From NCBI GenBank assembly GCA_964057225.1, contig OZ059900.1, forward strand, positions 9,610,001 to 9,674,000: a stretch of 64,000 nucleotides of DNA. Reading direction: 5' to 3'. Origin of the DNA: Auanema rhodensis. Taxonomy: Eukaryota; Animalia; Nematoda. Under the pieces are notes generated by a model. That model searched no databases, was not told the DNA's origin, and saw nothing but the letters and a program-made list of their open reading frames with translations. The first letter of the stretch is position 1; the number at the start of each line of letters is the position of its first letter. The translations under genes were made by a program, and so were the position numbers. Below, one piece after another: positions 6,089 to 46,791 of the stretch.

Positions 6089-8790
6089 TTAGTGACCATC
6101 AAGATACCATGGACGCCATTTAGTAAAATGCTCCTCTTTTCTATGCAGATCATGCGGCATTTCATTTTCTATAATTGACAGTTATGAAAGATTTCTAAGT
6201 ATTACGCTCACGTTTAGAGTTATCTTGATTAGTATTTGTTGTTAAAGGCAAATAATTTTTCATATTTGGTTCAGTTTTTGAATTCAATGCTTGATGAGCG
6301 TATAAGGGAACGCGAGTTGTTGAAATGAAGGGTGTTGGTGTTGTAGCTACGCTCTGAGCAACAGGAACTTGGGTCCGAACTACCGGTGTAGTTGAAGCTA
6401 AATTCTGCAGAAACGAATCAGGGTCAAAAGCATTTTTTAAATCCCAATTGATATTTAATTTGTCTTCATTTGACTTGATCATATTCACAAACTGAGGATG
6501 AATATTTGACTGCAAAATCCCTTGAATCAAATTGTAGACCTTGAAGTAAGAAAGTTGTTTTAGAAGAAAAAAAGATATTCAGCTTACTCGATAAGTTTTT
6601 GTTGTTTTTGTTGTTTCCGTGTTTTTATTTAATTGGCTTTCAAATGTCCCCAAATTTTCATCAATGAAATTGTGAAATTCCTGAGACAAAGAAAGTTTTC
6701 CTAAATTTAAATGTTCGCAGAAAAATGCTTGACTAATAATTTCATACGGGCAGGCATGTGTGCGTATTGTTGAGGCGCAATGTTTTCAGGGCTGCTTGCA
6801 ACTGCTTGATGAGTGATAGGCTTGGTTACTTTTGAATATATTTTTGTTGTAGACTTTGGTGTCGTTAGCTATAAAGAATTAACATTATATATTAATTGCT
6901 ATTGTGCTGGCTGAATGAGTTCATAACATCAGCATGGTGTAAAATAAAAGAACAGCATACTTGAATAGTTTGGCGGTTTAGAGGCTCTTTCACAGTGTTC
7001 ACGTTCGTTTTATTTGAGTCAGACGGGGCTAGATCATCTAATATATTTATAATTGCAAACAACTTTCTTATTATTTTTTATTTTTTTAAAGTCATGAATA
7101 TTGTTTAATTTCATATTTATATCCAAACTTTAACTTTTGTTCTTAACCTGTTGATTCATTTTTCACTTACTTCGCATGTTTTCTTGACAGATGATTGGGA
7201 ACATTGGATCAAAGACAGATTTCTGAATATCTGTGTAGAATCCCGTTGCTTCACTTCCGCAGTTTTCTGAAAATTATTTGAATTCAATTATGAAATATAT
7301 TGAGTCAAAGTTTTAATACAACATTAAGTACTATCAAAATCTTTTAAAAAAGAAAAACTTGCAAAACGCTTTTGCTGCTTTTGGACATTTTTCCAACTTT
7401 TCGGCAACAAAAAGAAATAGAAAAAATGAAAAAGTACAGCAATATTTGTAACATAATTCTAGAAAATAAACTGCGCTGGCTATATTTTATTCATAATATT
7501 TCATTTTTTATTTTGCAAAATCAGACTTAAAATTCAACTTACTCTCAATTTCATTGAGAGTGCAAACATTCTGCTCCGATGCCCAGCTATTAACCATACA
7601 TACTATATCAGTTGTGCCATTCAGTGCACAGCTATCCCTGAATATGAAATCAAATGTAAGTTATTTAGCTAAATTCTATTTCTTTTCTATATTCTAAACA
7701 CGTATTTCATCCTAGATCAGATGTTATTTATTTATTTTACAACGTACTTGCATTTCTGCACATCCCGTCCATGTAACGTACTGCTTAAGTTGCACTTAGC
7801 TTGAGCCTGTTCTTGATTAAGAACTGATGAAATACATTGCCGATGTGACATAAACAGCCTGAAAACAAACATAGAATAAGAAAATTCTTAAATTTCATCC
7901 CTATTATTTTATTTTGAGCGGATAAGTTTTAACACAAAGGGCCTGCTTTTAATATTTTTTCTGGCATTCATTTGAGATTACTTCGTACTTATTCGTACCT
8001 AGACTTCGACATGTTTCTTTATATATGTAGTTTCGTTTTTTTTTGTTGAATTATTTGTATTTCAATAGAACCTTACTTAATATATATTGCATATGAGTTT
8101 TGGACAGCGTTCACTTCCCCTTGGAATCCTAAGTTGTCTGTTGTTTGGCGGAATCAGTCGCGTGAAAGAAAAAATCTTTTGAGCAAATACGAGAAAGCGA
8201 TATACTTTGAAGAAAAATTGAAAATACTCGAGAAAATATTTGACTCAATTTTGTAAAAGTCAAACTACATAATATCAATAATTTGATTAATAATAGTAAT
8301 TCTCACATGTGTGTTTTTTTTGTGTTTAAAAATGCGGGAGAAAATGAGATAAACTTTACATACTTTTGTCTCTGCAAGCTGAACGGGCTGCATAAGTACA
8401 TAATGACACTGCCAACTTCTTTCATAATACGTTTCTGTTTGGTGTTACCGCATTTATCAATTTTTTCCCGAAAGCATGGCAATACATCACTGTATACTCT
8501 GAAACAGTTTTGTGTACTTGAGTCGGAAACATTGCTAATACCTGCATGTGTGTAATAACTTTGCTTCCGTTTCTAAATCGAATACAAGCTTCATAATATT
8601 TCTGCCAAATGGAGCTCCTTGTGCTTTCAGTCGAATAACACAGGTAAGAAATTCGCTGTCAGAACATGTAGACATACAAGCTGCTACTGAAAGTAAAAAA
8701 AGTTTTTTTTTGCAAAATATTATAAGTGAATAAAATTTTAAGTAAGTAAAACTTACCGAAACTCAGAAAAACAATCGTTCGAAATAGCAT
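6089..8790 (-). CDS. 11-exon gene for a secreted protein: signal peptide, Cys-rich helical domain (DUF19/CPG4-like), Thr/Pro-rich C-terminus
   Basis: ATG at 8790 (MLFRTIVFLSF|VAACMSTCSDSEFLTCVIRL...). Exons near 8757-8790, 8541-8687, 8363-8496, 7748-7857, 7543-7637, 7170-7266, 6961-7037, 6748-6868, 6588-6700, 6211-6539, 6089-6168 keep phase; ends ...KWRPWYLDGH*. Domain name is inferred from Cys spacing. Confidence 0.8.
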
Positions 8791-11700
8791 TGTCCGTAGT
8801 TTATCTTATAGATTCTACCAACCGATTAAAACAAAAAGTGTAGAAAAACGGACTATAATGATGCGAACAGTTCAGCTGACTGTCACAAACTAAACTCCTG
8901 TACGTGATGCTGATCAACGTAAGAACGATTTGAATGTGCTTAGCAGATGGTGGCGTTAGCCCAATTTGAGAAAAATGAGAGAAAGATAGATGAAGAGAGT
9001 GCTAGGTGAAGTAAAACAGATAGCAAACCAAGATATACAGAAAAGGATACGATTGTGGCTTCGTGTGGACTATACAGAGTAGTAGTGCAAGCAAACTCCT
9101 TAATAGGCTATAAACAAACAAATGTTGTGTTTTATACTCTACTTTCGCCAAGTCCATAGAATAGTCGAAGAGAAAGAAGGTTAATCGTTTTCTCTGTTTT
9201 ACTGTTGACGAACCGATATTTCTCTCTGATACTCAGATCTACTATATTGACAATACTGAAGAGGCATTGTGTTAATATCTCTCAGTCATTCAAATACTTT
9301 TTCTATCTTCCCTTTTGTTTTGTCTGCACATTGCATATCATCTTCTTTCTTTGTACCATTCAAGTGCCAAAATTTGCATTTCATCACAATTTCTTGGAAA
9401 ATATTTATATTCATAATTTATTATAAGTATAAATTACAAGTTAAAATATAACACAGCATAACTACAATATGAGAAAAATAACTTATGTGTACCGCCATCA
9501 AAAAAAAAACAAATTCTGCAAATTGTCAAAATAAATCCATATACAAAGAATGGGAAATATTTGAAAAACATGCAAACTTATATTATGTTTCAAATCATAG
9601 GTATATAAAAATATTTGAATGAAGCCAATTCACTTTTGGAATTGGAGCACAGTGACCTAACACTTGAAATACTTATTTTAGCGCCAAAAATATAACAACA
9701 AATCGCATTATTATTATATTATTCTTTTATTTATCCTAATTATATCGTTTAAAAATTTGATATTTATTATAATTTCATCTTGAATTTTTGTTTGAAGTGC
9801 TAGGTTTTGTGCAACAAATTCTGCGATTTACTCACATACTCATAAAAGAATGTTTTTATTCTAAACAATAGATTGACCTAACTTAGTGGTTGTAGAGTCT
9901 TTTTAATGTATTTTGTTACATTATATTGCGTACAAATAGATTGTTTAGCACAGATCGCAGGTGCTACCATCATATTAAAATGTATAAATTATATGTTTTT
10001 CTGATGCTCAAAAAGTAATTTTATTGCTAATTCATGCGATAGAGCCATTATAAACAAGTTTAGTGCGTATGGCAGCTCACAGTTTCGTAGCCAACAATCT
10101 AGCTATAGGATTGAGCAAAGCAATCTATGTTAATTCACATGGACAAGTCTAGCGATGAATCGTGATTGTAGTCTAAAATTCAGTAGAACATTAATATTCT
10201 TAGCCAAGTGACTAGTTATTGTTAAATAATGGATTCTGGATAGGACGGAAGTGAGCTAAAAGAGAAAAAGTCAGCCACTCTTTCAACTTCCCGATATGTT
10301 ATGCTAAGGAAGAAATTTCTGATGCCCCATGAAAGCTCATTTGGATTTTTTTTTACCAGTTCCTATGCCTTTTCCAGCTTTTTTCATTTCCTTCAGCTCT
10401 TAAATTATATATGATTTTTGTAAAAAAAATTGATTTAAAATACGCGTTTTTATGTATTAGCATCGACTTCCATAGTGATCTAGATAAAGTTATGAAAAAT
10501 TCATGTTCAGTTTGATTCATATTTTCTATTTTGAGAAGTATTCGCTAACCCTTTGTTCTCATCTCTCTCACTCTCTCGATCCGGAAATTACTGCATTTTT
10601 CACGGAAATCTGATATTATTGCTTTAGCTCATGAAACGGTTTATTTCACGTTATGAGCACGAAGCAAAAAAAAAAGTATAATATCAAATTTTTATTTCTC
10701 GTTTTGCTAATCTTCGTGCTTTGACAGTGGCTCATTAAGCGCTCCGCATGTATTAAAACTGATTGTCTTCCTTGAAATCTCATATTTTATTCGTGACATT
10801 TGTAACACTTGATCATGATTGAGCGGATTTGTACAAGATGCTCAAAGGGAAAGTAATTGTGTAAACTCAATTCGTCTAATTATATAATTGCCATCTATCG
10901 GGCAACAAACTTGAGTATCGCATACAGCATTTTATGCAAAAAAATCCGTGTAACTCCTACTCCTGAGCTCTATAATATTTTTTCTCAGTAGTTCATATTA
11001 GCTTTGCAGTCATTGTTCATATTTTTTTTTCCAGGGAAAAAAAACTTTCGCTATTTTTGCTCCCAAACAATATGTGATAAATAAACAATTTCCAAAAATG
11101 AAATTGTAGCTAAAATGACTGTTTTCCATGTGTCAGAGAACATCAACCGCAAGAATTTTTTTTTGTTGACTTTTTTTGCTCTTTTTTTCTGTAAACTTTT
11201 CTGCTTTTACTGTTTTTTTTTGATATACTAAACGTGTTCTTTAAAACATTATGACGTTATGTTATGGGCTTAGTGACGAATACTTCCTGAATTATTTCCA
11301 GTACATTCCAATATTCTGTTACAATGAACACAATATTTAGAAAACAAATTTTTTATTTTTTCTTCGATGTTTTGTTGTGATTTTCTGAAAAAAATTGTAG
11401 CTTCATATCTGGTACTTCAATTCATTTTGCTTTCGCTCTAATTATATCATGAGAAATTCATTAATAATCAAAGTTCTTTTATAATGAGTTAGTTCGAACA
11501 ATAGTTCAACGTTATGCAGTTTGAGCATTTGTGGATAAGGATGCTTGTCTTAAACAATTAAGTGACAAACAGACATGTTCGGAATGAAGTGAAACATCTT
11601 CAGACCACTTTCCATTTTGTTTTCTGGCCATTCACCGAAATTCCCCTCGTTTTGTGCCTTCTTTACCCTACCTCTCATTCCAGCAATCCCAGCGTATTCC

Positions 11701-28888: not shown

Positions 28889-29007
28889 CAGCTCTAATCG
28901 ATGCTGCTGACAGTAGGCTATCTTGTAAGATCTGGTACCTCACCCAACGCGGCTACTGGTTAGTACTAAACGTGAAGTCGGCTTGTTCAAACTATTTCAA
29001 AATTTTT
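28889..29007 (+). pseudogene. Degenerate 5S rRNA copy
   Basis: 28908-28986 aligns without gaps to the intact 5S in this window: TGACAGTAGGCTATCTTGTAAGATCTGGTACCTCACCCAACGCGGCTACTGGTTAGTACT..AGTCGGCTTG vs TGAAAGTACGCCATCCCGTCCGATCTGGCAAGTCAAGCAACGTTGGGCCCGGTTAGTACT..AGACGGCTTG. Both ends are decayed; outer coordinates are extrapolated. Confidence 0.7.
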
Positions 29008-29029
29008 TATGATTTCAAAGATACGGTAT

Positions 29030-29115
29030 GTTATTGACAAATATGATCACGTAGGTGCTCCAATGCGACGCGGGATTATTTGTCAACACGAGTAATTCAA
29101 ACAGCGTATTCAAAC
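29030..29115 (+). promoter_or_regulatory. Conserved upstream block with CGCGGGAT (E2F-like) and ATTCAAA (CHR-like) motifs
   Basis: Homologous to 36415-36487 (-) and shares its core with ~46118-46146. Each copy lies 120-240 bp upstream of an orphan gene ATG. Confidence 0.55.
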
Positions 29116-29314
29116 ATGACGAAAATTTTTATTTTTTATTTTTCTTTATTATTTTTATTATTTCTTTATTAGTTTTTTATTATTTTTTAATTTTTTCTTC
29201 ATTATTTCTCTGTTTTTTTCTATTTTCTGTTGTTTTCTCAAAAGTTTCAATTACTTAATAAATTCTTTAAGGTGATTCAATATCTTCTTGTTAGTGTATT
29301 CAATCTATCAGATA

Positions 29315-30430
29315 ATGAATAACACAGTTAGTCATTTCCCAAGTGTTCCTTCTGTTATTTCGTAAATTTTAAAGATTGTGTCCGACAGTGATGTTTCTAG
29401 TGACGAATCTAAAGATTTCTTAACAATTGAAGAGTTAAGGGAATGTTTAGAAGAACGAACTGAGGATTATACCACGATATGCAAAAAGAATGAAGACCTA
29501 CTACTTAACGAATTTTGGACAAAGCAGGAGATTTCCTTTTATATGAAAGAAATCAATCATCTCAAAGTTTGCAACAGATCGGAGAGAATAAGTCCGAGTG
29601 ATTTGCTACGTGAAAAGAATAAAATGTTGGAAATGGAATCATTGTGTGAAGATATGCTGAATGCAATGGATGTTGTATACGATGGATTGACTGCAAGCTC
29701 TATTGATATGGAAAGAGTTGGCAAAGTGATCACGCAAACGATTCGAGACCAGAATTGTAAGATTCTTTCTCTTAATAGTGATAAAAACCTGATATTTAAT
29801 CGTTGCACAGAAAAGGTTAGTTATAACATGATATTAACAATTAATCGTTATTTCTCAGAAATTTGCTGAAGATCCTGCAAGTAAGGTTACTAACAACGAT
29901 GTTTTCAATCTAATACAACAACTGGTGAGCATTTTTTTCACTTTTTCAATGAACTATTCATGGCTTTCAGAATGTTTTTGGATCCAGGAAGTTTAACAAG
30001 CATGTAATGACTATGAGAGAAATAGTGGTAACGATAATTCTGATGTTCTTTATCTATTTATGTAATCAATTTCAGTTATATAACAGTAAATACCCTGATC
30101 TTCAATTACGCGAAGTAAGCAGCTCTGTCTTTAACCGTATCAAGTACTTGGTAAATGAATAGTATCTATTAAATCCTACTAATACTTCTGTTCGCAGATG
30201 AACGGCAAATATTTTCCTCAGCCAATTGATGTTCAAAATTTGAACAAACCATATAGTCGCACAAGACTAGCACCCTATACTCGTTATGAAATGAGAGTAA
30301 TGGGAAGCATTGTATGTTTTTTCTCTAATATCTCTAGTTCTTCAATATTTTTCAGGTTTACAAAGACAACTTTTTGGAAGAGCCAGTTAACGCTCCGAGA
30401 AAGACATCAAGAGAAGGTTGCAGCAATTAA
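29315..30430 (+). CDS. 7-exon orphan gene with an acidic/coiled-coil N-terminal half; function unknown
   Basis: Exons 29315-29326, 29375-29815, 29859-29924, 29971-30027, 30076-30150, 30198-30296, 30356-30430, with all-phase-0 introns of 43-59 nt. Reads MNNT|IVSDSDVSS...|VYKDNFLEEPVNAPRKTSREGCSN*; AATAAA at ~30612. Confidence 0.8.
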
Positions 30431-31780
30431 TCTGCCACTTCGGTTTCATTCCGCTTTCGTAGAAATCTTTTTTTCATTAATAAATATGAATGATATATAT
30501 TTATTAATGTTTTGTAACATAATTTTGAGTTGTATCCTTGGGTCCTATTTTTATAGATGTGGGCAAAGTTTTTATGCTTTATTTTCCAATTTTTGTCTTG
30601 TATTTTAATGAATAAATTTTGATTATTTTATTATTTTGTTCTTCAAACTAAATGCTAACTGCGTTCATGCCTGTTTTATGCAAGCTCGGTATATCATTTC
30701 AACAGCTAGTTGAATTGCATCAAATTGTAAGAAACTTGGGTTTCAATTTGAATGTAATATATATATATAGTTTAAGGATAAACCAAGTCCTATTACTACA
30801 AGCTAAAATTCCAAATAATTTTGAATACTGATTTTGTTGTCTTGGAAGAGATATGAAGATCTATATATAGCCTAAGAGTTATTTGTTTATGAGGATTCGC
30901 AAATTTTCTTATCTCTATCTTCGTGTTTGAATCAATATATCTGATAATCGATAAATTACTCTTTAGACTGAATCAAAAATTAATTTCAAGGACTGTACTC
31001 CGCTCTTCCATTTATCGATTTCTCAAAATCATATTTGTTATATTTAGGAATAAAACAAAAAAAAAGTTTCCGGTTAGTTGGTAAACAGTATAGAAATGGA
31101 ATTCTCGTAAGTCTCAAAAGTCTTTCTTTCTCTCTCTCTCTCTCTCTCTCAATTACTCACTCTTGCTCTCTCTCTCTCTCTCTGTTATATTTTTCTTTTT
31201 TATTGAATGCTGTTAGGCTCAGCCTCTCCTTTAGCCATTTTTGTTGAAAATCTGAATAACTCAAATTTTAACAAGTAATCATGAACCTGACTATTGACAG
31301 TCATCTAGGATGACGTAAATGAGAGCAACTGACAATAAATTAACAAAAAAATTCAGTAATTCAGAATTGATTATCCTATTTATCTTCTGGCTTTTAATAT
31401 ACAACACTAATTTGACATAAGTTTAACTGTCTAATTGTCTAGACATCAGATTACAACCTATATATGTAATAATAATATTTTTCTGCATTTATTAACAAAA
31501 TGTTTATCAGATCAAGAGTGCAAGAACTCGTGAATGGGTGTCAGGAGTCAAAATTATTCCTTCAGCAAGAAATGGCATAGAGTAGGAAACTTGACATGAC
31601 GAGATTTTAACTCATGAATCGCGGTTTCATTGACACTTTATCAAATAATTAATTATTCTATCGCTCTATTCGGTTCCCCGATGGAAATAGTGTACGTAAT
31701 ACTAGGCATTTTTATAGTTTATCATGTATGTAGTATGAATTATCTTATTATATATTTTATATTTTATAGTTAATTCATAT

Positions 31781-31853
31781 AACATCTTAGTATAATGGTT
31801 GTATTTCAGTTATAGTAAGGTGCACTTGTAGGTTCAAATCCTACAGTGATATC
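31781..31853 (+). pseudogene. tRNA-like element in the left arm (mirror copy 34257-34329, -)
   Basis: A-box TAGTATAATGG, B-box GGTTCAAATCC, perfect T-arm GTAGG/CCTAC. Acceptor and anticodon stems do not pair. Confidence 0.55.
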
Positions 31854-32106
31854 AAAGAAAATATAAAATATCTCTCTCTCTCTAATATATAAATCTCTCT
31901 CTCTTTCTCTCTCTCTAAAATAGATAAATCTCTCTATAATCAGACACTTGGCCAAGTTACTACAGGAAAAACTTGAAGCTGCACTAATCATAATCATAAA
32001 CAAATTCTGAAACTCGTCTTACCCTCGACTCCATTGTTTCGAAAAGTTTTAGATTTCAGATACTCTTGTCACTCTTCTTATTTGCGATTAAAACATTAAT
32101 ATTATA

Positions 32107-32177
32107 AGCCAAATGGTGGAGTGGTCTGTATGGTAAACGCTTACAAGCCACTGTAAAGGTACGATCCTTTTCTGCGT
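32107..32177 (+). pseudogene. Second tRNA-like element in the left arm (mirror copy ~33933-34003, -)
   Basis: A-box-like TGGTGGAGTGG/TGGTCGAGGGG, B-box-like GGTACGATCC, T-arm AAAGG/CCTTT, followed by a T-run. Anticodon arm is non-canonical. Confidence 0.4.
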
Positions 32178-35100
32178 TTTTTATGAAAATCAATACCAAA
32201 TCGAAAATCCAAAAAACGCTCCGATGGATTTGGACCTCAAAAAGACCATTTTTTTGAATTCCAAAGCTTATAACTCTGTTCATAATCAATTTTCTTTCAA
32301 ATTTATTATTAAATCTCGAAGCCCAGCAATAGGCCCTCCTTTTCACAAAAATTCAAAGCTGTATCTCATCTCACTCAATAGTTATTCCTCCTCAAAACGA
32401 ACACAAATATTCAAAAACTTGACTTTAAAGGCCATTATCTCCTTTCTCCTTCAAGTTATCGAATTTTTTTCAACAGATTCTAAACCTACTCAACGAGATC
32501 TATCAGATGAACTACTTATATAGAAGTTTAAAGCTCTATGAAATTTTGAAAAATCAAGAATTTAGCCATTTTTCAGTTTGAGAAATAAAAAATTTGCATT
32601 TTCTTTGTTTTGAGTGATGAATCTGAAGCGGATTGAAACGCTGATTTCAAATATGAAAACCTTAACTTCCAATTTTCACTCTGAAAAGAGTTACGAGGCT
32701 TTAAACGTTTTGACTTTGAACATTCAGAAGGCTATATCTCCTTTCAGATAGCGTTTTAAAGACTCGTAAGTATCAGAATCGTTTTCTACGCCATTGTTTC
32801 ACCTTATGTAATCAGTTTCAAAGCGTTACCTCAATATTTTCAAATTTCGATCAAATTGTCCGATTCCATGTACTCCCCCCTTACCTACTTTTCGACCAAA
32901 ACTGGCCATCACTCAAAAGATATTTTCAGTTAAATCGATAATTATATGATATAATTAGAATCAAATTGATGTTTAGGAGAAAGAATAACATGAATACTCA
33001 TCTTCAAACTCTTGAATTCCTCAGTTGCATAATGGTAACTTAGATTCTACTTCATGAGGAATCAGAAATACTTCATGAGGAATCAGGATTAACAACTGAC
33101 AACTCTTCAGAAAAAGTTTGAGAATGTGTTTGATTTACATCATTTTGATTCTAATTATATCATATAATTATCGATTTAACTGAAAATATTTTTTGAGTGA
33201 TGGCCAATTTCGGTCAAAAAGTAGGTAAGGGGGGAGTACATGGAATCGGACAATTTGATCGAAAATTGAAAATATTGAGGTAACGCTTTGAAACTGATTA
33301 CATAAGGTGAAACAATGGCGTAGAAAACGATTCTGATACTTACGAGTCTTTAAAACGCTATCTGAAAGGAGATATAGCCTTCTGAATGTTCAAAGTCAAA
33401 ACGTTTAAAGCCTCGTAACTCTTTTCAGAGTGAAAATTGGAAGTTAAGGTTTTCATATTTGGAATCAGCGTTTCAATCCGCTTCAGATTCATCACTCAAA
33501 ACAAAGAAAATGCAAATTTTTTATTTCTCAAACTGAAAAATGGCTAAATTCTTGATTTTTCAAAATTTCAAAGAGCTTTAAACTTCTATATAAGTAGTTC
33601 ATCTGATAGATCTCGTTGAGTAGGTTTAGAATCTGTTGAAAAAAATTCGATAACTTGAAGGAGAAAGGAGATAATGGCCTTTAAAGTCAAGTTTTTGAAT
33701 ATTTGTGTTCGTTTTGAGGAGGAATAACTATTGAGTGAGATGAGATACAGCTTTGAATTTTTGTGAAAAGGAGGGCCTATTGCTGGGCTTCGAGATTTAA
33801 TAATAAATTTGAAAGGAAATCGATTTTGAACAGAGTTATAAGCTTTGGAATTCAAAAAAAATGGTTTTTTTGAGGTCCAAATCCATCGGAGCGTTTTTTG
33901 GATTTTCGATTTGGTATTGATTTTCATAAAAAACGCAGAAAGGGATCGTACCTTTACAGTGGCTTGTAAGCGTTTACCATACAGACCCCTCGACCATTTG
34001 GCTTATAATATTAATGTTTTAATCGCAAATAAGAAGAGTGACAAGAGTATCTGAAATCCAAAACTTTTCGAAACAATGGAGTCGAGGGTAAGACGAGTTT
34101 CAGAATTTGTTTATGATTATGATTAGTGCAGCTTCAAGTTTTTCCTGTAGTAACTTGGCCAAGTGTCTGATTATAGAGAGATTTATCTATTTTAGAGAGA
34201 GAGAAAGAGAGAGAGATTTATATATTAGAGAGAGAGAGATATTTTATATTTTCTTTGATATCACTGTAGGATTTGAACCTACAAGTGCACCTTACTATAA
34301 CTGAAATACAACCATTATACTAAGATGTTATATGAATTAACTATAAAATATAAAATATATAATAAGATAATTCATACTACATACATGATAAACTATAAAA
34401 ATGCCTAGTATTACGTACACTATTTCCATCGGGGAACCGAATAGAGCGATAGAATAATTAATTATTTGATAAAGTGTCAATGAAACCGCGATTCATGAGT
34501 TAAAATCTCGTCATGTCAAGTTTCCTACTCTATGCCATTTCTTGCTGAAGGAATAATTTTGACTCCTGACACCCATTCACGGGTTCTTGCACTCTTGATC
34601 TGATAAACATTTTGTTAATAAATGCAGAAAAATATTATTATTACATATATAGGTTGTAATCTGATGTCTAGACAATTAGACAGTTAAACTTATGTCAAAT
34701 TAGTGTTGTATATTAAAAGCCAGAAGATAAATAGGATAATCAATTCTGAATTACTGAATTTTTTTGTTAATTTATTGTCAGTTGCTCTCATTTACGTCAT
34801 CCTAGATGACTGTCAATAGTCAGGTTCATGATTACTTGTTAAAATTTGAGTTATTCAGATTTTCAACAAAAATGGCTAAAGGAGAGGCTGAGCCTAACAG
34901 CATTCAATAAAAAAGAAAAATATAACAGAGAGAGAGAGAGAGAGAGCAAGAGTGAGTAATTGAGAGAGAGAGAGAGAGAGAGAAAGAAAGACTTTTGAGA
35001 CTTACGAGAATTCCATTTCTATACTGTTTACCAACTAACCGGAAACTTTTTTTTTGTTTTATTCCTAAATATAACAAATATGATTTTGAGAAATCGATAA

Positions 35101-35617
35101 ATGGAAGAGCGGAGTACAGTCTACACTATTTCTCTATTAGTCTATTTGGACTTCCCGCTTCTTGGAACCATCGAAGATCCGAATTGAATGTCGACATTCA
35201 TGTTTGAATGAACTCTTAAATCAGATTCTTTTCATTTTCCTCACTAAATAGATAGTGAGAATTCAAAATTAGAATAATAGGGTCTTGAGAGACCCGTTTC
35301 ATTTAGTTTTTCTGCTTAAACGACTAGGTTGACCTGACATAGTTGTGCGCCGTATGCCACATGGGGGCAGATTACTTGTTCATTTTGAAAATATCCCTGA
35401 TTTGGAAGATTGTTGTGTAGGGTTAAAGAATTAAAAAACCAAACTTCTTTCGAATAGTTAGACCAAAACTACAAAACGAATAAACGGTGTTTGGATAGCC
35501 TTTCACATGTTTTGTTTGTAAAAATAAAAGAAAAACTATGAAAGATAACATGAAACATTTATTGAAAAACAAAACAATTTATGAAAATAAGAAAGAAAAA
35601 TCAATTTCAGCAATAAT

Positions 35618-36292
35618 CTAGATGTCTATTCCAAATTGGTAGAATCGTTGAAACATTGTTCGACTGAAAACAGATGATTACAACGAAAAAAAAAAAAAAA
35701 CTCACTGTTGCTGTGCCAAAAGTGTTTTCAACTTCCTGAAATGTTTTCGGTTTGCATCCAACTCTTCCAGAACACCGGCCGGAAGTGAAATACCACGTTC
35801 ACGGTGAAGTTCTACTTGTGTTTGGACAAATTTCATATAATTCGTCATGAAAATATGAAGTTTTCGGAATTCCAATTGTGTCATGTATGTGTGTCTTTCA
35901 TCTATACTTAAGGCGTTTGCTTTCACTTCGAGGAATCTTCTCATATTAGCCAAATTCTTCTTTAAGTCTAGTACTAACTCTGAGTTCATGTTGTACAGTT
36001 CGATCTCATGAATAAGCTGGTCTTCCAACATTGAAATTCTAGAATTCAGCTCTTCCATTCCTTTAGCCGAGTCAGGGTCAGTCTCCAAAATTGTATCCAC
36101 TTCATCAAAACGATCATATCTCTCTAATCGAATTCGTGTGATCTCTTTTTTACATTCAGCAATACGATCTTGAATGATTTTCTCATGAGCGTTGTCATGA
36201 TCACGAAAAATATCATAATCGCTATATAAGGGTGCCTCTACTTCCTATAATCAAGTGGAAACTAAGAAAATCAACCAATAATAGCTAACCAT
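35618..36292 (-). CDS. 3-exon orphan coiled-coil protein, paralogue of 46245-46791
   Basis: ATG-only exon 36290-36292, exon 35706-36244 (EVEAPLYSDYDIF...LEFRKLHIFMTNYMKFVQTQVELHRERGISLPAGVLEEL...), last exon 35618-35663; GT-AG introns of 45 and 42 nt. Confidence 0.8.
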
Positions 36293-36414
36293 ATCATATA
36301 ATTTATATTCAGGAAAAAAAGAAAAATAATTGAGAGTGATGAGAAGCAATTACCTAGAAAAACTAAAAATTTAATTCAAAAATTCAAAAAAATAAATCAA
36401 AAATATGCCAAAGA

Positions 36415-36487
36415 CGTTTGAATAATTGACAATAATAATCGAAAATCCCGCGTTATCAGTAGAGCGCATATGTGATTATCAATAACT
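36415..36487 (-). promoter_or_regulatory. Second copy of the CGCGGGAT / TTGTCAA / ATTCAAA upstream block
   Basis: Reverse complement GTTATTGATAATCACATATGCGCTCTACTGATAACGCGGGATT...TTGTCAA..ATTCAAAC aligns with 29030-29115. Confidence 0.55.
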
Positions 36488-36520
36488 AATTTCAGGAACT
36501 TTTTTTTGTGAAAACGAAAA

Positions 36521-36639
36521 AGCTTACGGCACCCGGGATTCCCAAGCCGTCTCCGATCCAAGTACTAACCGGGCCCAACGTTGCTTGACTTGCCAGATCG
36601 GACGGGATGGCGTACTTTCAACGTGGTATGGTCGTAAGC
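36521..36639 (-). rRNA. 5S rRNA gene, intact, 119 nt
   Basis: Reverse complement GCTTACGACCATACCACGTTGAAAGTACGCCATCCCGTCCGATCTGGCAAGTCAAGCAACGTTGGGCCCGGTTAGTACTTGGATCGGAGACGGCTTGGGAATCCCGGGTGCCGTAAGCT, followed by a T-run terminator. Confidence 0.97.
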
Positions 36640-36695
36640 GATTTCAATGTTTAGTTTTGCGCCTATAATTGTGAATTTTCTTAAAGGTCTCGCAG

Positions 36696-37130: not shown

Positions 37131-38372
37131 CCTTCCTTTTGGACAGGATCTCGTAAAGGAACTCAAGCGCTACCGTCTACATCTCTTATTCAATTAAAAA
37201 TCTTATCTCTCTCTTAAAGTTAGCTTATAATATTTTCTTAAAAAACTCTAAAACTTTTCTATTAAAAATTATATCCAAAAACTCTTTACAAAAACTCAGT
37301 TTCCATTCATTATATTCTCATAAATCATTTTCAATTATTCATAAGAGTACTTATATCATTTATCATTCTCTCTATCCAAAATCCTATATACGAAAATTAT
37401 TCAAATTCAATAATTAACTTTTCTAAGAATTATAAGTTTATTTTCACATTTTTTGAACAAAAATAGTTAAGTTCTCTATAAAATTAATTTAGAATTAAGA
37501 AATAAAAAAGAATATTGCTTCTATACCTCTCAATCTTAATCATCTTATCATCTTATCTGAATCTTCATCTTATCATACTATCTTAATCATCCTATCATAC
37601 CATATTTTCATTATTTTCTTTATGTTCGTTTATAAAACTATTATTCTCATGCTACTACACTGTATTCTCATAAACCCACCCCTTCCCCCCCCCCCCCCCG
37701 TAATTTCATAAACAAGAAATCCCGTGTTAAACACGACAGTAAAAATATTTATTAGGCGCAGCGTATCCAAATTCCGATTACCTTAGCACCTGAAAAAAAA
37801 AACGAAAAATAATTAAATTAATCAATAAGTTTTAACTCATACGCAAAAACCACCCCCCCTCGTTAAGAATAATGCCAGACACTCAAGAGACTCGAGCGGA
37901 GGCCGACACTCAGGATAAGACGTACGCCCCATGAAATAATTAGAGAATTTTTGAATTGAAATCTGCCCCACATTGATATAAATAATAAGAGTGGTCTCGC
38001 CATCATAGAGTCAGGGAGCAGGATGCAGAAGGCAGCTGACATACCTGTGACTCAGATAGGTTAATGAGGTCTGGGAAAATGGAATGATTGCGAAAATTCT
38101 ATTTTGTATCCTTGTCCCAAAAGACTGGCGAACTATTAACTTTCATTTCATGCCTTTTTCACAATATAGAACTTGTCCCTTCGAAAAGGCACACTAGTTT
38201 CAAACCTGTGTTAGACCCGGACGAGCTATATTGGTAAAGAGATTACTTGCAAGACTAGCTACCTTCATAAGAATCGCGCACACAAACCCAACATTATTCT
38301 TTACGTTTTTCTATATATAAAATTATTTTGGCACACGTTGGATATAACAAATTTCCTTACAGGATACCAACG

Positions 38373-41300
38373 ATGCTGCCCAATACTGGTCCAAAACCTC
38401 CGCTGGACCCTGCTGCCACTTCAAATATTATAAGAAGAAAAAGACAACCGCCCGCAACATATTCTCCCCCCTCTGCAAAACAAGCGAAGTTAAGCATTAA
38501 AACAAAGTCAATGGTAATACATACCCCAAGACATCGCGGCATTCAAAAACAATTCACCAATCCCAAATCACATGAAAAAACGAAGAAACAAAAAACAGAC
38601 ATAGTCGAAAGAAACACCTTAGAAAAGAAAATTATCCCAAACATTAAATCTATTCCTAAAAACATAGCAAGCAAAGGGAACCCTCAAAACCCCCCAACCA
38701 ACACCATACCAAATACAATCAACCCAATCAATCCTTTAATAGCCACCCCTAGAAGAAGCAATACACCAACCACACAAAAATCACCTACGCCCGCACTTTC
38801 TTCAACCACACCCGCAGTAAGCTCATCCCCACCTCTACGAAACTCACCTTCATCCATTGATCATTCTACATCCGGGCATTCTCTATCTCCGTCTCTTCCA
38901 TCGCAAACTAATCAAGCAAATACTTTTGTTGCAGAAAACAAGAGAATTAACCCAAGAATGGACCTAATGGACGAAGGCGCACCACTTACGCAAACCTCGG
39001 GAAGGGCACCTGTTCCAACACCTACAATCATCCCTCAACCAGCAGCGATTCCGTCCGCCATACGCGATATAAAAGCTCCACGCTACGATGGAAAAACACC
39101 ATTCAACCGCTATCTACTATACCTAGATGAACACTTCAACGCTACAAGAACAACTATGCCCGAACGTCTTCAAAGCATACAATTATTGCTAGAAGATGAT
39201 CGAGCAAGAGAAGCGTACAGAAAACTCACAACCGAAGATAAGCGACTTGGATGGGACCATGTCAAGAAGCGACTCTCAGAAATGATCACACCGAAAAAAC
39301 AGAGAGAACGAGCAATGCACCGCCTACATGGCTTGAAACAGTTACCAACGGAATCGGTACAAAGCTTTGCAACAAGATGTTCTAACGAAGCCTACTCGGC
39401 TATGGACATGAACAACGAAAGTGAGCTTATCGGCACAACACATGTTCCACTAGCACGAGAAACATCTCCGTGGGAACACCAGACCACGAAAGCATATGTG
39501 GTTAGCTTAGAAAACAAAACGCTAAGACCAGGAGAAACAAGAACGCTCACGCTAGAAGTACACGATCCAGAAAGCTATGAACAGGCGTTTCTAGATTGTA
39601 AGAAACCAGGCAACAAACTCTCTTTCACGCCTACTATATTTACGCCAACTGGATACGGAGTACAAATTTACGCGACAAACATATGCAAACAGCCACTCGA
39701 AATTCAAATGAATCAAGAAATAGGGATAGCAGAAGCGATACCAAAGGACAACCAAGAAAAATACGAAGGACAATACATACCTCCAGAAGCTCGATGGGAA
39801 GAACAACTGCCATATTTCCCAGACAATTTCATCAATGAGCTTGACCTCTCAGAAGCCTGCTTCTCGCAAATCGAACAACAGCAACTGAAAGAAATAATTT
39901 TACTACATAAACAAGCGTTTCTCAACGAAGATAGAAATATCGGACTCTTCCTAGGACCAATTGAACACTCCATTCCAATCATGCCAGGAAAAACACCATC
40001 ATTCAAAATTACTTATCGTATACCACTCTCCCAACAAGAAGAAGTGGAGAAACAAATAGAAGAAATGCTACAACAAAGAATCATTGAACCATCAAACTCA
40101 ATGACAACTAGTCCAGTAATTTTGGTGAAAAAGAAGGACAAAACTTACAGATTTGTAACGGACTTTCGAGCGCTGAATGCAATCACCCAGAAACAAGTAT
40201 ACGTCATATCAAACATACAGGACATCCTAGATTTGGCCGCTGGAGCAAGGATCTTCAGCAACTTTGATTTAGTATCTGGATTTTTCCAAATACCTCTTAA
40301 GAAAGAAGATCGTCATCTTACAGCTTTCACAACAACAAGTGGAACTTATCAATATTGTCGAATGCCGATGGGATTATGTGGATCACCCCATACTTTTCAA
40401 AACGCAGTACGATACCTGCAATCAATGGTTAAATGCAAGCTATTCGTATATCTAGATGATTTACTGTTAATCTCTGAATCTACGACAGCACATTTAAAAG
40501 ATATTGAAGAAGTTTTGGAAGCAGTAACTCAAATAGGATTCAAAATAAAACTGAAGAAATGCGCATTCGCAAGAAAGGAAGTAAAATTTCTAGGATACAT
40601 AGTTGGACAAGAAGGAATTAAACCGGACCCACATAAAATTAAGGCAATACAAGATTATCCCCAACCAAAATCAACAACAGGAGTAAGAGCTTTCATGGGA
40701 GTAGTAAACTACTTCAGAAGGTTCATAAAGAACGCTGCAGGAATAGCAACACCACTCTACAACCTCACTCGGAAAGACACTCCGTTCAAATGGACAGAAG
40801 AAGAAGAAATTGCTTTTAATACTTTGAAGAAAACATTGACTCAAGCACCTGTGCTACAAGCACCAATCCCGAAACGACCATATGTTATTGAAAGTGATGG
40901 AAGTATGATAGCAGTTGGCGCTGTACTACTTCAAGCGAAAGACGATCAAGAACCATTACATCCAATAGCTTTTGCTAGTCGGAAACTCAACAAAGCTGAA
41001 AGGAATTATCCACCAATAGAAGTAGAAGCATTAGCTCTTACATTCGCCGTCAAACAATTTCGCACCTACATACTAGGAACAGCAACCAAAATTATCACGG
41101 ACCATAGACCACTCACTAGTTTAATGACTAGAAAGGATTTAATAGGTCGTTTAGCAAAATTTCAAATTGTTTTACAAGAATACGATATTGAAATTATCTA
41201 CAGACCAGGAAAATTAAATAGTGTATGTGACGCATTATCACGATATTTTGAAGATGAAATCAACGAAGCAAAACCACCAGCAAAGAAGAAAAACGAAAGA

Positions 41301-43262
41301 AAAACGACGGAAGATACTATTCATCAGATAAACACCTTCACGATAGCAGATATTCGATCAGTTCAGAATCAATCAAATTGGATAAAAGAAACTATGGATA
41401 AAATAAAGAACAATACAGCTGGACGACAACTGACGGACAGATATATTGTGTACAACGATGTACTATACTCAAAACCAAAAAGAAGCCTACAAGTACCACG
41501 AACAATTTTACCACGAGAAGAGCACATAATTAATCCAATTATGAAGAAATTTCATGAAGATCCGACACTCGGAGCTCATCTAGGAATAAACAAAACAATG
41601 GACTCAATATCAAGACGATTTACATGGACTGGAATGCAAGAAGACATTACAAACTACATCAACAGATGTCTTGCTTGTGCGAAAAGAAAGAACAACCCTC
41701 ACGAAGCAACGGTGGAACCAATGAAAAATTTTCCAACATCAACAAAACCATGGCAAAGAGTACACATGGATATACTCGGACCATTACCTAGGACAGAACA
41801 AGAAAACAGATATGTTCTTTCAATTCAAGATTCTTTTTCAAAATGGATAATCGCAATTCCGCTAATCAGACAAACATCAGAAGAAATTATATCAGCTATC
41901 GAAAAATATCTCTTTTATGTTTTTGGACCACCTGTTACTATCATCACAGACAATGGATCTAATTTTATTTCAAACGATTTCACCACTATGTGCAGTAATT
42001 TTGGAACTACACACCACACTACTATGCCGTATTACAAAAACGCTAACGGACAAGTAGAAAGATTACATCGGACGATCGAAGAAGCATTAACAGCCTACGT
42101 TAATGACGAACAAAACGATTGGGATAAGATACTTCCGAAGATTATTTTTACACTCAACAGATTACCAAACGCCACCACTAAAACATCACCATACGAATGT
42201 TTGTTTGGACAAGTAGCACGTCTACCCATTGACAAAAACTTGGAAACACCGGAAGAACAAAATACCACGGATCAGCTCAAAAACTTAAGAGATATTCAAG
42301 AAAAAGTCAAGGAAAAGATTGCCACCAATAAAGAAAGAATGAAGCAGAAATACGATCAAGCACATAGGACAAAAGAAAGAATATTAGATATAGGAGATCG
42401 AGTATTTGTACAAAGAGCGAACCCAAGCAACAAATTACAAATACGAAGAGATGGACCTTACCGGATAGTGACAATTGAAGGAAACAACATCAGCATAACG
42501 GACCAAGATGGAAATATTATAAAAGCTCACAAAAATAACATACGTTATTTTCCACCAGACGATAATCTTATATCAACAAGAAATAATGAAGAAGAGGAAG
42601 AAGAGGACCAAGACATAGCAAACGAAGAAGAAGAAGAAGAAGCAAGTTGGAATAATCTGGATGAATGGGAACAAACCAATAATACGGAAAATAACAACAA
42701 CTGTTACCCAACAGGCAGTCCAGATACTTTCGCGCAACTGTTACCTATCACAGGGAATAACAGAGGAGTAAACGAAGAAGAAATTGAACATAATTCAGAA
42801 ACACCTGACGACCTTGCTACAGCAAGAAGAATAACAAATTCTAATATACAATTAGAAGATGAATCAACAACAATCGACAGAATTCAAGAGGACCTCAGAC
42901 AGCTGACACCTTTCTCTCAAGAAGAAGGTCCTAATCAAAACGATATAGAAGATAATAACGCAAAAACATACGAAAAGCTACGAGATCAATTCAAGAATGA
43001 AAACAGAAAGGAGCTATTTGAGGACAGAAACAAAAACTCACCAGCAATCAAAAATTGGAACACTACACTTGCCGCAGCACTAGGAATAGGAAATGAAAAC
43101 TCACGCCCGTATCATGTTAAACTACAACCCAAAAGAAAAACACAAGACGAAGAAATCAGAAGTAATGGAGAATTGGAACTACATGGAAAAGCGGATCAAA
43201 GCAAAAAGCAGCAGAATAAATCTCCAACGCAAAACAAAGGAGAACAAGTACGAAACTTTTAA
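38373..43262 (+). CDS. Single-ORF Gag-Pol polyprotein: partial Gag, RT, RNase H, integrase, acidic tail; no recognisable aspartic protease
   Basis: RT motifs FDLVSGFFQI, MPMGL, YLDD; RNase H ESDGS, EALAL, TDHRPL; integrase H-H-C-C, HMD, TDNG, NGQVER and GPY. First ATG at 38373 (the track starts at a TTG at 38328). No D[TS]G motif upstream of RT. Confidence 0.93.
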   Translation: MLPNTGPKPPLDPAATSNIIRRKRQPPATYSPPSAKQAKLSIKTKSMVIHTPRHRGIQKQFTNPKSHEKTKKQKTDIVERNTLEKKIIPNIKSIPKNIASKGNPQNPPTNTIPNTINPINPLIATPRRSNTPTTQKSPTPALSSTTPAVSSSPPLRNSPSSIDHSTSGHSLSPSLPSQTNQANTFVAENKRINPRMDLMDEGAPLTQTSGRAPVPTPTIIPQPAAIPSAIRDIKAPRYDGKTPFNRYLLYLDEHFNATRTTMPERLQSIQLLLEDDRAREAYRKLTTEDKRLGWDHVKKRLSEMITPKKQRERAMHRLHGLKQLPTESVQSFATRCSNEAYSAMDMNNESELIGTTHVPLARETSPWEHQTTKAYVVSLENKTLRPGETRTLTLEVHDPESYEQAFLDCKKPGNKLSFTPTIFTPTGYGVQIYATNICKQPLEIQMNQEIGIAEAIPKDNQEKYEGQYIPPEARWEEQLPYFPDNFINELDLSEACFSQIEQQQLKEIILLHKQAFLNEDRNIGLFLGPIEHSIPIMPGKTPSFKITYRIPLSQQEEVEKQIEEMLQQRIIEPSNSMTTSPVILVKKKDKTYRFVTDFRALNAITQKQVYVISNIQDILDLAAGARIFSNFDLVSGFFQIPLKKEDRHLTAFTTTSGTYQYCRMPMGLCGSPHTFQNAVRYLQSMVKCKLFVYLDDLLLISESTTAHLKDIEEVLEAVTQIGFKIKLKKCAFARKEVKFLGYIVGQEGIKPDPHKIKAIQDYPQPKSTTGVRAFMGVVNYFRRFIKNAAGIATPLYNLTRKDTPFKWTEEEEIAFNTLKKTLTQAPVLQAPIPKRPYVIESDGSMIAVGAVLLQAKDDQEPLHPIAFASRKLNKAERNYPPIEVEALALTFAVKQFRTYILGTATKIITDHRPLTSLMTRKDLIGRLAKFQIVLQEYDIEIIYRPGKLNSVCDALSRYFEDEINEAKPPAKKKNERKTTEDTIHQINTFTIADIRSVQNQSNWIKETMDKIKNNTAGRQLTDRYIVYNDVLYSKPKRSLQVPRTILPREEHIINPIMKKFHEDPTLGAHLGINKTMDSISRRFTWTGMQEDITNYINRCLACAKRKNNPHEATVEPMKNFPTSTKPWQRVHMDILGPLPRTEQENRYVLSIQDSFSKWIIAIPLIRQTSEEIISAIEKYLFYVFGPPVTIITDNGSNFISNDFTTMCSNFGTTHHTTMPYYKNANGQVERLHRTIEEALTAYVNDEQNDWDKILPKIIFTLNRLPNATTKTSPYECLFGQVARLPIDKNLETPEEQNTTDQLKNLRDIQEKVKEKIATNKERMKQKYDQAHRTKERILDIGDRVFVQRANPSNKLQIRRDGPYRIVTIEGNNISITDQDGNIIKAHKNNIRYFPPDDNLISTRNNEEEEEEDQDIANEEEEEEASWNNLDEWEQTNNTENNNNCYPTGSPDTFAQLLPITGNNRGVNEEEIEHNSETPDDLATARRITNSNIQLEDESTTIDRIQEDLRQLTPFSQEEGPNQNDIEDNNAKTYEKLRDQFKNENRKELFEDRNKNSPAIKNWNTTLAAALGIGNENSRPYHVKLQPKRKTQDEEIRSNGELELHGKADQSKKQQNKSPTQNKGEQVRNF

Positions 43263-45143: not shown

Positions 45144-45368
45144 CGACCCGTGAGATGGAGCTAGCAAGCCAGAATCCACCTCAGGTCTCAAAAATCGGTT
45201 AACCTTATTGTGATCCAATGGAACACACATCGAAAGTTAATTCGATAAGAACGATCATTCTCCCCCAACGCGGATGGGCCGTTCCCGCCAGCAGAACAAG
45301 GGCTGTTGGTCCATAATATTGTGAACCAATGGAACACATATCGAAAGTTATTTCGATAAGAACGATTA
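45144..45368 (-). pseudogene. Two tandem 5'-truncated U2 snRNA copies (45275-45368 with internal deletion; 45144-45257 also 3'-truncated)
   Basis: Both start at about U2 nt 38 (TAATCGTTCTTATCG / TGATCGTTCTTATCG) after the same TTGGGGGAGAA junction. Confidence 0.85.
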
Positions 45369-45385
45369 TTCTCCCCCAAAGGGGA

Positions 45386-45569
45386 TGGGCCGTTCCCGCC
45401 AGCAGTGCAAGAGCGGGTCGACCCGTGAGATGGAGCTAGCAAGCCAGCATCTACCTCAGGTCTCAAAAATCGGTTAACCTTATTGTGAACCAATGGAACA
45501 CATATCGAAGGTTAATTCGATAAGAACGATTACTACACTTTGATCTTAGCCAAAAGGCCGAGAAGCGAT
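45386..45569 (-). ncRNA. U2 snRNA, full length (~184 nt), variant just 3' of the branch-site pairing region
   Basis: Reverse complement ATCGCTTCTCGGCCTTTTGGCTAAGATCAAAGTGTAGTAATCGTTCTTATCG...; Sm site GATTTTTG; stem-loop IV TTGCACT; ends CGGCCCA. Confidence 0.93.
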
Positions 45570-46244
45570 ACTGCAACATCGTCAGAAACATAAACATTGA
45601 GATTATGTATCGTACTTCATACGAGTGCACTCGCTCTTTTGACCACAAGTGTCAGATTTGACTATTTTCGGTGTACCGGTCATTGCTGGCTCCCAGTAAG
45701 TGACAGATTTAGGCAATTCGTGTATTTCTTATTTTTTGTTTAATTGAATTATTATTGTATATATATATATATATATATAGAAATTAAATAATAAAATAAT
45801 TTTTATATAAAAATGGAAAAATAATTTTTTTCAGAATTTTTTTTAGTAGCTACCTAGACCCTTTATAAACTAATGTCACTACTGTCCACTATATTTTTTT
45901 CCATATTTACTAGAAATACATATATATATATATAACCAAGTGAAGAAAATAAATAAAAAGAAGTATAATATACCATACAAAACAACTTCCTATAAAACAT
46001 TTTCATGGAAACGCTTAACTATATAGTATGATCATCAGGATCGCCTAGTTTTGTTTTCTCCTTAGATACGGTGACCTGATGTGCTTGAAGTTTAATGTAA
46101 TTAGCGTCCTTTTCATGCGCGCGGGATCAAAATATAATATTTGAATCATATACCAAATATATTTTTTGATTTCTGTCTATTATTTTCTATAATTAACTGA
46201 GTTGTCATCTATCCATTTTCTGCTAATTTTATTTATAATTCAAT

Positions 46245-46791
46245 ATGGTTTGTTACTGTTTTTCTATTTTCTTGTGACTAATATATTCTTAGGAGACGTT
46301 TGAAGATTTGTTTTATCCAATAGATCTCGAAGCTCTTGAATCTGATTCTACTGTTGATGAAGCCAAATTTGATGAACTTTATGATGAAATAACTACACTT
46401 AGGCAGGAGATCAAAACCCAAAAATTGCGAAACCAACACAAATTGCTTGAAGTCGCAAATACAAAAAGTCGGATAGCTGACATGAAAGCTAGAATCGAAG
46501 CGGAATTACTAAAGAAAACCAATCCAAAGCAGAAAGACGTTGAACTTTGCAAAATGGAATATAGGAAACTTTATTCTCTTCAGCATGAATATATAAATTT
46601 CTTTTGTAATCAAATTAATGTTTTAAACGAAGCTGGAATTCCAATCCCAATCACGTTATTGGACGAATTTCAAGAAACTTGTGCGTATTTCAAGAGAATG
46701 TTGTCAAATATCAACGAAAATGTGTAAGTTTTCTTAACTATACGTATAATTACTAAAGTATAATAATTTTAGAAGTGATATTAAACCATAG
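46245..46791 (+). CDS. 3-exon orphan coiled-coil protein, paralogue of 35618-36292
   Basis: ATG-only exon 46245-46247, exon 46293-46723 (ETFEDLFYPIDL...MEYRKLYSLQHEYINFFCNQINVLNEAGIPIPITLLDEF...), last exon 46773-46791. Intron phases match the paralogue; CGCGGGAT at ~46120. Confidence 0.8.

Follow-up and report, generated by a model that had tools for sequence, protein, structure and literature searches.

Genes for 5S ribosomal RNA (rRNA) are found linked to other multigene families, with 45S rDNA, histone, spliced-leader and small nuclear RNA (snRNA) genes, U2 included, being named in a passage of PMC3464664 that cites Drouin & Moniz de Sa 1995 and Cross & Rebordinos 2005. The 5S unit of Caenorhabditis elegans, about 1 kb long, carries the SL1 gene (PMC8961926). 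The genome of the nematode Auanema rhodensis holds an unusual variant of such linkage, described here from a window of 64,000 nucleotides (nt; C8:9610001-9674000, contig C8 being OZ059900.1) and from searches of the genome, 181 Mb in 112 contigs. In this variant a 5S gene is followed by a short conserved, promoter-like block and then by a small gene of one of two orphan protein families, A and B, and the units recur along C8 in tandem arrays and around palindromes. The case is classed with the known linkages of 5S to other multigene families because a different repeated family includes the 5S gene in its unit and because the 5S copies are uniform.

With the described linkages the locus shares the position of the 5S gene within another repeated family's unit, tandem co-amplification and 5S uniformity, and, as in oysters and fishes, U2 genes lie beside 5S genes. 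It differs in the partners, which are two lineage-specific, fast-evolving protein-coding orphan families rather than conserved housekeeping families; in having one block common to two unrelated families; in units that, besides being tandem, are also dispersed and palindromic; and in main 5S arrays that lie elsewhere, without the partner. As with 5S and SL1 in C. elegans, a nematode 5S gene shares a short unit with a second gene that would be separately transcribed, whereas the partner here is an intron-bearing mRNA gene lying downstream of the 5S gene in the same orientation. An Rfam scan of the C8 units finds no SL1. No description of the combination of 5S, orphan families, shared block and palindrome was found in the literature, which is weak evidence of its absence.

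The best explanation, to which we give a probability of roughly 0.65, is local co-amplification of a 5S gene with the promoter of a gene family, the resulting amplicon family being confined to about 5.7-10.5 Mb of C8. A half-unit comprises, in order, often a U2 gene, then a 5S gene together with an upstream element of its own and a T-run terminator, a spacer of 62-78 nt, the block of ~100 nt, a further 100-250 nt and a small mini-exon gene of family A or B, often ending in a non-coding core that is present as an inverted pair with two half-units facing each other. Units would multiply through tandem and fold-back (inverted) segmental duplication and through ectopic recombination, and the latter would also have moved the 5S-plus-block module between two unrelated gene bodies. 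The 5S copies would be working genes, maintained through selection, gene conversion or both, and co-amplified neighbours of the gene families rather than a required part of their promoter.

Two cassettes facing across a palindrome

The two cassettes of the window flank a palindrome, cassette A facing right into the left arm and cassette B facing left into the right arm; outside the arms, alignment between the two sides is limited to the 5S-plus-block stretch. Gene models were searched exon by exon, with splice structures read from the sequence. R1 denotes a primary-sequence model of the block, and HMM a hidden Markov model. The features are:

28889..29007, plus strand: decayed 5S pseudogene of cassette A (Smith-Waterman, blastn)
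29024..29128, plus strand: promoter-like block A, GTGCTCCAATGCGACGCGGGAT, core 29069-29076, TTCAAA 29096-29101 (alignments; R1; motif)
29315..30440, plus strand: predicted gene A of family A, 3' end approximate (sequence reading, family alignment, HMM)
30964..32972, plus strand: left arm of the palindrome (98.5% identical to 35144-33137)
32973..33136, no strand: palindrome spacer, 164 nt (inverted-repeat alignment)
33137..35144, minus strand: right arm of the palindrome (inverted-repeat alignment)
35193..35501, minus strand: 3' flank of cassette B (87-92% identity in at least 10 partial copies)
35618..36292, minus strand: predicted gene B of family B (sequence reading, family alignment, HMM)
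36393..36497, minus strand: promoter-like block B, GCGCTCTACTGATAACGCGGGAT, core 36445-36452, TTCAAA 36417-36422 (alignments; model R1)
36521..36639, minus strand: intact canonical 5S rRNA gene of cassette B (RF00001, 107.5 bits, full length)
36640..36678, minus strand: 5S upstream element of C8 type, TATA-like ATTATAGGCG..AAACTAAAC (conserved among C8 5S units)

The 5S gene of cassette B covers model positions 1-120 of RF00001, for which the gathering score is 38, and its nematode-like sequence is the same as that of the commonest 5S of the main arrays. From its 3' end it is 69 nt to CGCGGGAT, which forms the core of the longer block B, and 229 nt to the ATG of the gene on the same strand (36290-36292), in agreement with an initial annotation of the window that had placed the 5S gene ~70 bp before the block and ~230 bp before the gene. 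Block B matches R1 with 58.1 bits (E 1.3e-13). Exon 1 of gene B would consist of the ATG alone, with GTTAGC directly after it, followed by an intron of 45 nt (36245-36289) and an exon 2 of 179 open codons (36244-35706); the gene may end at a stop at 35704-35702 or, by way of another intron (35705-35664), in a 15-codon exon ending at 35618. The mini-exon, an ATG with GT directly behind it, is also present in paralogs of gene B. Of the flanks, the 3' one corresponds to query positions 1300-1608 and is the part retained in the partial copies, and the upstream element of the 5S gene, unlike the array spacers of contigs C3 and C4, is cut off upstream of 36678 by a long terminal repeat (LTR) element, BLAST copies beginning at query 123-129.

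This element is a Ty3/gypsy-type LTR retrotransposon at 38328-43262 (plus strand), extending to about 36690, with an open 1,644-aa gag-pol open reading frame (ORF) that includes reverse transcriptase, RNase H and integrase. Its end adjoins the window 5S gene about 56 nt upstream. The same LTR end, likewise with a 5S gene after it, is found at C4:15518744 (L049; L-numbers denote loci taken from elsewhere in the genome for comparison), which hints at insertion beside 5S genes.

Cassette A repeats the layout with a 5S gene that has decayed. Infernal, run on 28.5-29.4 kb at E<=10, returns no 5S match, and 28889-29007 does not rise above the gathering threshold. Smith-Waterman comparison nonetheless ranks the same interval first among non-self matches to 5S in the window (score 32, next best 22), and it scores 27 against a null maximum of 15 from about 1480 random windows, the similarity covering 5S positions 20-97. 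In blastn, 28908-29217 is collinear with 36620-36314 (60.6% over 322 columns, E 5e-11). Because there is no Infernal match and yet significant similarity that is collinear with the flank, 28889-29007 is a 5S pseudogene or relic, not a 5S gene. It ends 62 nt before CGCGGGAT at the core of block A, and the downstream gene has its ATG at 29315-29317; the shared layout of an intact and a decayed copy, as first proposed, thus stands. Block A matches R1 with 35.2 bits (E 1.8e-6) and carries the 20-nt motif described below with 2 mismatches. Gene A would begin with a four-codon exon (29315-29326, ATGAATAACACA followed by GTTAGT), a 48-nt intron (29327-29374) and an exon 2 of 147 codons (29375-29815); exon 3 is probably 29859-29885, and the later exons and the 3' end are approximate. 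The 5S gene of cassette A appears to have lost its function and decayed while the protein-coding gene stayed open.

Two unrelated orphan families

The initial annotation had viewed the window cassettes as one duplicating gene unit in which promoter blocks still align and proteins barely do. The blocks are indeed homologous, but the proteins belong to two different families: BLASTP between the exon-2 proteins of A and B gives no match, and hhalign of the A profile (11 paralogs) against the B profile (8 paralogs) gives a probability of 0.2%. Because the proteins are unrelated by BLASTP and by profile comparison, A and B are to be taken as unrelated families, and the window cassettes, which carry one each on opposite sides of the palindrome, not as diverged copies of one gene. 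The two families nevertheless carry the same block and a similar short first exon and intron (one to four codons, then 42-48 nt), which suggests that the module was transferred between them, the transfer being deduced from the non-homology of the proteins.

Genome-wide HMM searches find 43 exon matches for family B and 22 for family A, on C8 only at 6.18-10.53 Mb, most with open frames of 150-200 codons; for most of these 65 hits the upstream region was judged from coordinates only. Invariant or nearly invariant residues are E-YRKL...EYMKF.CNQ...P.P...EF...YF in family B and FW.KQE..FY.KE.NH...C...MD.LC...L in family A. The ratio of nonsynonymous to synonymous substitution rates (dN/dS) is 0.34-0.53 in seven measurable paralog pairs, and on this measure A and B are coding genes under relaxed constraint.

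Neither family has a recognisable relative in the databases searched. Pfam yields only noise for A and B; a word-indexed search of 5.8 billion proteins returns nothing for either profile, and for family B an exhaustive search with the profile through 1.84 billion representatives likewise returns nothing, the coverage of nematode proteomes being uncertain in both. AlphaFold (AF2) models B as all-helical with four long helices at a mean predicted local distance difference test (pLDDT) of 83.5, and A as helical with three long helices at pLDDT 76. Foldseek against the PDB (A and B) and a shape search of the ESM-Atlas (B) give generic helical matches only, with E>0.3 and a template modelling (TM) score below 0.5. 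The proteins are orphans that probably form a coiled coil or helical bundle, much as the initial description of fast-evolving, coiled-coil-like orphan genes had it.

A third copy of the block and a third family gene lie further along the window, near the U2 gene, which with the 5S gene of cassette B makes up the two RNA genes of the window that reach Rfam gathering level:

45380..45569, minus strand: U2 snRNA gene (RF00004, 146.7 bits)
46075..46179, plus strand: third block copy, GCGTCCTTTTCATGCGCGCGGGAT, without 5S upstream (alignments)
46245..46727, plus strand: third family gene, of family B (HMM 159 bits)

Its ATG (46245-46247) is followed by a 45-nt intron (46248-46292) and by exon 2 from 46293. 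The protein is 98% identical to that of C8:9768552-9768932 (L075), which lies about 112 kb off and is oppositely oriented (synonymous divergence, dS, 0.014), and the pair is a very recent duplication.

Recurrence of the unit along contig C8

A DNA search with cassette B finds many partial and full copies, on C8 only, after which eleven regions were taken for a survey of 5S genes. Rfam recognises 23 intact 5S genes in these regions, often with U2 130-370 nt upstream of the 5S gene, and U2 adjoins 5S at L055, L057 and L059. When 18 of the C8 5S genes are aligned together with their surroundings, the genes themselves prove identical, conservation reaches about 55 nt upstream and takes in a TATA-like ATTATAAGCG at about -30, and the block comes 62-78 nt past the 5S end in 16 of the 18, the other two having an insertion or deletion there. 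This layout is far beyond chance. Past the block, at least five types can be told apart among the aligned sequences, unrelated or hardly related to one another, and these lead into B-type genes, weakly B-like C-type and D-type genes and A-like genes. Two loci hold tandem arrays with a unit of 2,676 nt (L054) and 2,258 nt (L060), each unit with 5S, block and a family-B-like exon.

Within L054 (C8:9325000-9334999) each unit consists of 5S, block and a C-type gene, followed by a 5S remnant (its last 16 nt), a block and a D-type gene. In places a full U2 gene has behind it a head-to-tail run of partial U2 copies, repeating about every 164 nt, each of which restarts at about U2 position 35 and scores 80-84 bits in Rfam; such runs lie at 45230-45445 of the window (minus strand), at 2027-2787 and 7496-8420 of L056 and at 9421-9851 of L061.

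Nearly all C8 5S copies have the commonest array sequence, a few differing by one base, while their flanks are only 59-93% identical. The identity of the 5S genes to those of the main arrays amid diverged flanks indicates selection or conversion acting on the C8 copies, and suggests that they are working 5S genes.

A promoter-like block that belongs to the gene families

The block is about 100 nt long, with the consensus GCTCYAnTGATAMGCGGGAW followed, 26-31 nt on, by a TTCAAA-like hexamer. The 20-nt motif GCTCYANTGATAMGCGGGAW, allowed up to 2 mismatches, has 45 matches in the genome, 44 of them on C8 at 5.7-10.3 Mb and a single one, with 2 mismatches, on C1; a control with the reversed pattern gives 0. 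A genome search with R1 gives 46 matches at E<0.002, every one on C8. The next tier of R1 matches, at a chance-like 22.6 bits, is a C1 satellite, a long tandem repeat at C1:10.94-11.48 Mb with a period of about 2.47 kb and more than 100 evenly spaced weak matches, whose resemblance to the block is probably chance similarity in AT-rich sequence.

How the block associates with 5S and with the families can be read from these 46 copies, the counts being lower bounds, as the genome searches score the best candidates only. An intact, verified 5S gene lies within 200 nt upstream of at least 19, a family exon lies within 2 kb downstream on the same strand of 32, and at least 13 have both, which together with the tandem arrays bears out the expectation that further units of 5S, block and gene exist. 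The block also precedes family genes that have no 5S, at L065, L071, L074, L075, L076 (twice), 46.1 kb of the window, L058b, L059b and L061c, and Smith-Waterman comparison upstream of such 5S-less family blocks detects no 5S relic. In the main 5S arrays on C3, C4 and C6 the block is absent; their spacers are entirely different, and only the 5S gene itself is common to them and the C8 units. Since family genes without 5S have the block and the main 5S arrays do not, it belongs with the gene families and not with 5S. Its position 100-250 nt upstream of the ATG, its conservation amid diverged surroundings and its retention irrespective of 5S lead us to infer that it would serve both families as core promoter, with RNA polymerase II (Pol II) reading it. 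An snRNA-type proximal sequence element (PSE, bound by SNAPc) was considered and rejected, since the 120 nt in front of six full U2 genes are mutually conserved and unlike the block.

The composition of the block raises the question of which regulators might read it. In C. elegans, targets of the DRM complex have E2F and LIN-54 sites (the latter a cell cycle genes homology region, CHR) adjacent to each other in one hybrid motif (PMC3093354), and the block resembles DREAM promoters of that species in having an E2F-like GCGGGAA/T and a TTCAAA-type hexamer near the presumed transcription start. On these grounds the block could be an E2F plus CHR element and the families germline or cell-cycle genes repressed in the soma, a reading which we hold to be unlikely but which is compatible with local co-amplification, as it would give the promoter its identity. 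GCGGGAA/T matches the half GCGSSAAA of the E2F consensus, and a hexamer of TTCAAA/TTTGAA type follows in most copies. The site itself mostly reads GCGGGAA or GCGGGAT, some copies having GCGCGAA or GCGGATT, and is only a half-match to TTTSSCGC/GCGSSAAA. The E2F/CHR-like motif of the initial annotation is borne out by half, GCGGGAA/T being E2F-like but the hexamer lying 26-31 nt from the core rather than adjacent as in the DRM hybrid motif, and a CHR (TTYGAA/TTCRAA) directly beside the E2F site was not encountered in the block. The block further differs from the C. elegans promoters in its additional conserved 5' half, of which 12 nt (GCTCYAnTGATA) are unexplained by E2F, and the long motif is all but confined to C8 (44/45 genome matches).

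5S and gene are separable

The units on C8 form a series in which either partner may be damaged or missing. In cassette A of the window the 5S gene has decayed by point mutation and the gene is open; in the second gene of the L054 unit (L054b) the 5S is reduced to its final 16 nt; and at L056, at L057 and in the second cassette of L055 (5S at 8413-8531) the gene is deleted, and the 5S and block that remain are joined directly to the cassette's 3' end. Either partner, 5S or gene, can be lost independently of the other. When the family-B tree is labelled by 5S state it is poorly resolved and the 5S-linked state is scattered, which fits an old linkage with repeated loss, or module exchange, and not one young clade; as a test of ancestral linkage against repeated gain the tree was set aside, its resolution being too poor.

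This series bears on whether the 5S gene does more than accompany the promoter. Occupied by TFIIIA, TFIIIC and RNA polymerase III (Pol III), it could contribute actively to the Pol II promoter downstream of it, serving for example as an insulator or as a nucleosome-free anchor, and 5S and block would then be a true dual-polymerase module recruited by two unrelated families. We regard such functional coupling as rather unlikely. It would account for the constant 5S-block spacing of 62-78 nt across lineages, for a linkage found in deeply diverged lineages of family B as well as in family A, for 5S sequences that stay identical while flanks diverge, and for an in-frame stop in the sole D-type gene with a truncated 5S. 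It is at odds with the many open family genes that have a block and no 5S, with the open exon of gene A behind a dead 5S and with the persistence of 5S and block where the gene has been deleted. Because 5S-less open genes and gene-less 5S-plus-block copies both exist, neither part needs the other for its retention, and an obligate form of the Pol III plus Pol II unit first envisaged has become less likely.

Some of the same observations, with others, weigh against local co-amplification with the 5S gene as a mere neighbour. The 62-78-nt spacing is constant in lineages whose proteins are only 25-40% identical, a possible sign of functional coupling, and among D-type genes the single one with a truncated 5S (L054b; copy L054 142-378) has an in-frame stop, those behind an intact 5S (L063, L064) being open. 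For the transfer of the module between A and B no breakpoint is seen. The census is a lower bound, and a promoter role for the block, transcribed genes and active 5S copies on C8 are predictions from the DNA.

Palindromes and the mode of amplification

Primate and mouse sex chromosomes carry palindromes in which ampliconic gene families are kept by arm-to-arm gene conversion. The palindromes on C8 are like these in their short spacers (164-372 nt), in arms that are 97-100% identical where different palindromes differ by 7-30%, and in holding lineage-specific multi-copy genes in one chromosome region. They differ in being of kilobase scale, not tens to hundreds of kilobases, and in that the near-identical arms of the window end short of the genes.

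The palindrome of the window was first noticed as mirrored ORFs. The inner part of its arms (31702-32972, mirrored at 33137-34407) is a core of which C8 has at least 25 occurrences at 5.65-10.33 Mb, nearly always as inverted pairs and with 68-93% identity to the window copy. Cores measure about 0.75-1.4 kb and the spacers of inverted pairs 30-370 nt. A protein-coding core was rejected for want of a frame preference in tblastn, and a tRNA or known RNA for want of a tRNA or Rfam match; if transcribed, the core could form a long hairpin RNA. By comparison of coordinates, family genes converge on cores, for example at 9421-9433, 9341-9346, 6182-6187 and 7117-7122 kb. Arm identity within palindromes is 97-100% (window, L056, L057, L059), the arms of L056 spanning this range and those of L057, 2,349 nt long and including a U2-like copy, 5S, block and core, being 100% identical. 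This pattern fits arm-to-arm conversion, which we infer rather than observe, or very young fold-back duplications.

A (CT)n/(GA)n microsatellite lies in both arms of the window palindrome (31121-31200 and 34909-34991). A (CT)n repeat also figures at the 5S-U2 linkage of oysters, to judge by the title under which PMC3464664 cites Cross & Rebordinos 2005.

Recurrent end points of the copies (query 123-129 and 1605-1608/1637) and a recurring inverted core are also what a mobile element would leave, whether the cassette or the palindrome were carried by a foldback or long terminal-inverted-repeat transposon, by Helitron-like capture or as a 5S-derived retroposon. We consider this very improbable. 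Block, both families and core are all confined to one contig, within about 5 Mb; inside the unit there is no transposase or reverse transcriptase ORF, the core being non-coding; no poly-A tail or terminal repeats are seen at the outer ends; and segmental duplication would account for the tandem arrays and 100%-identical arms. The cassette has multiplied, as the initial annotation proposed in describing it as spreading, but purely locally, in about 5 Mb of one contig and probably by tandem and inverted segmental duplication.

A more far-reaching proposal would join several of these elements, with the 5S gene, bound by Pol III/TFIIIC some 70 nt from the E2F-like block, as a functional upstream part of a Pol II module that two orphan families acquired by recombination in a palindrome-rich region; the families could then be selfish or germline-conflict genes and the cores sources of hairpin RNA. 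This combination seems to us improbable.

Significance

Local co-amplification of 5S with a gene family's promoter has consequences for annotation as well as for the study of new genes. Dispersed 5S genes in this genome mark unannotated orphan genes, which calls for caution in annotation, and the region offers a compact example of new gene families expanding in nematode palindromic amplicons. The series of paralogs with intact, decayed, truncated or absent 5S lets the influence of a Pol III gene on a Pol II promoter be tested directly. If there is no coupling between the two, the locus would simply be an instructive case of co-amplification; if the 5S gene is a functional part of the Pol II module, it would amount to a dual-polymerase cassette that occurs naturally in an animal.

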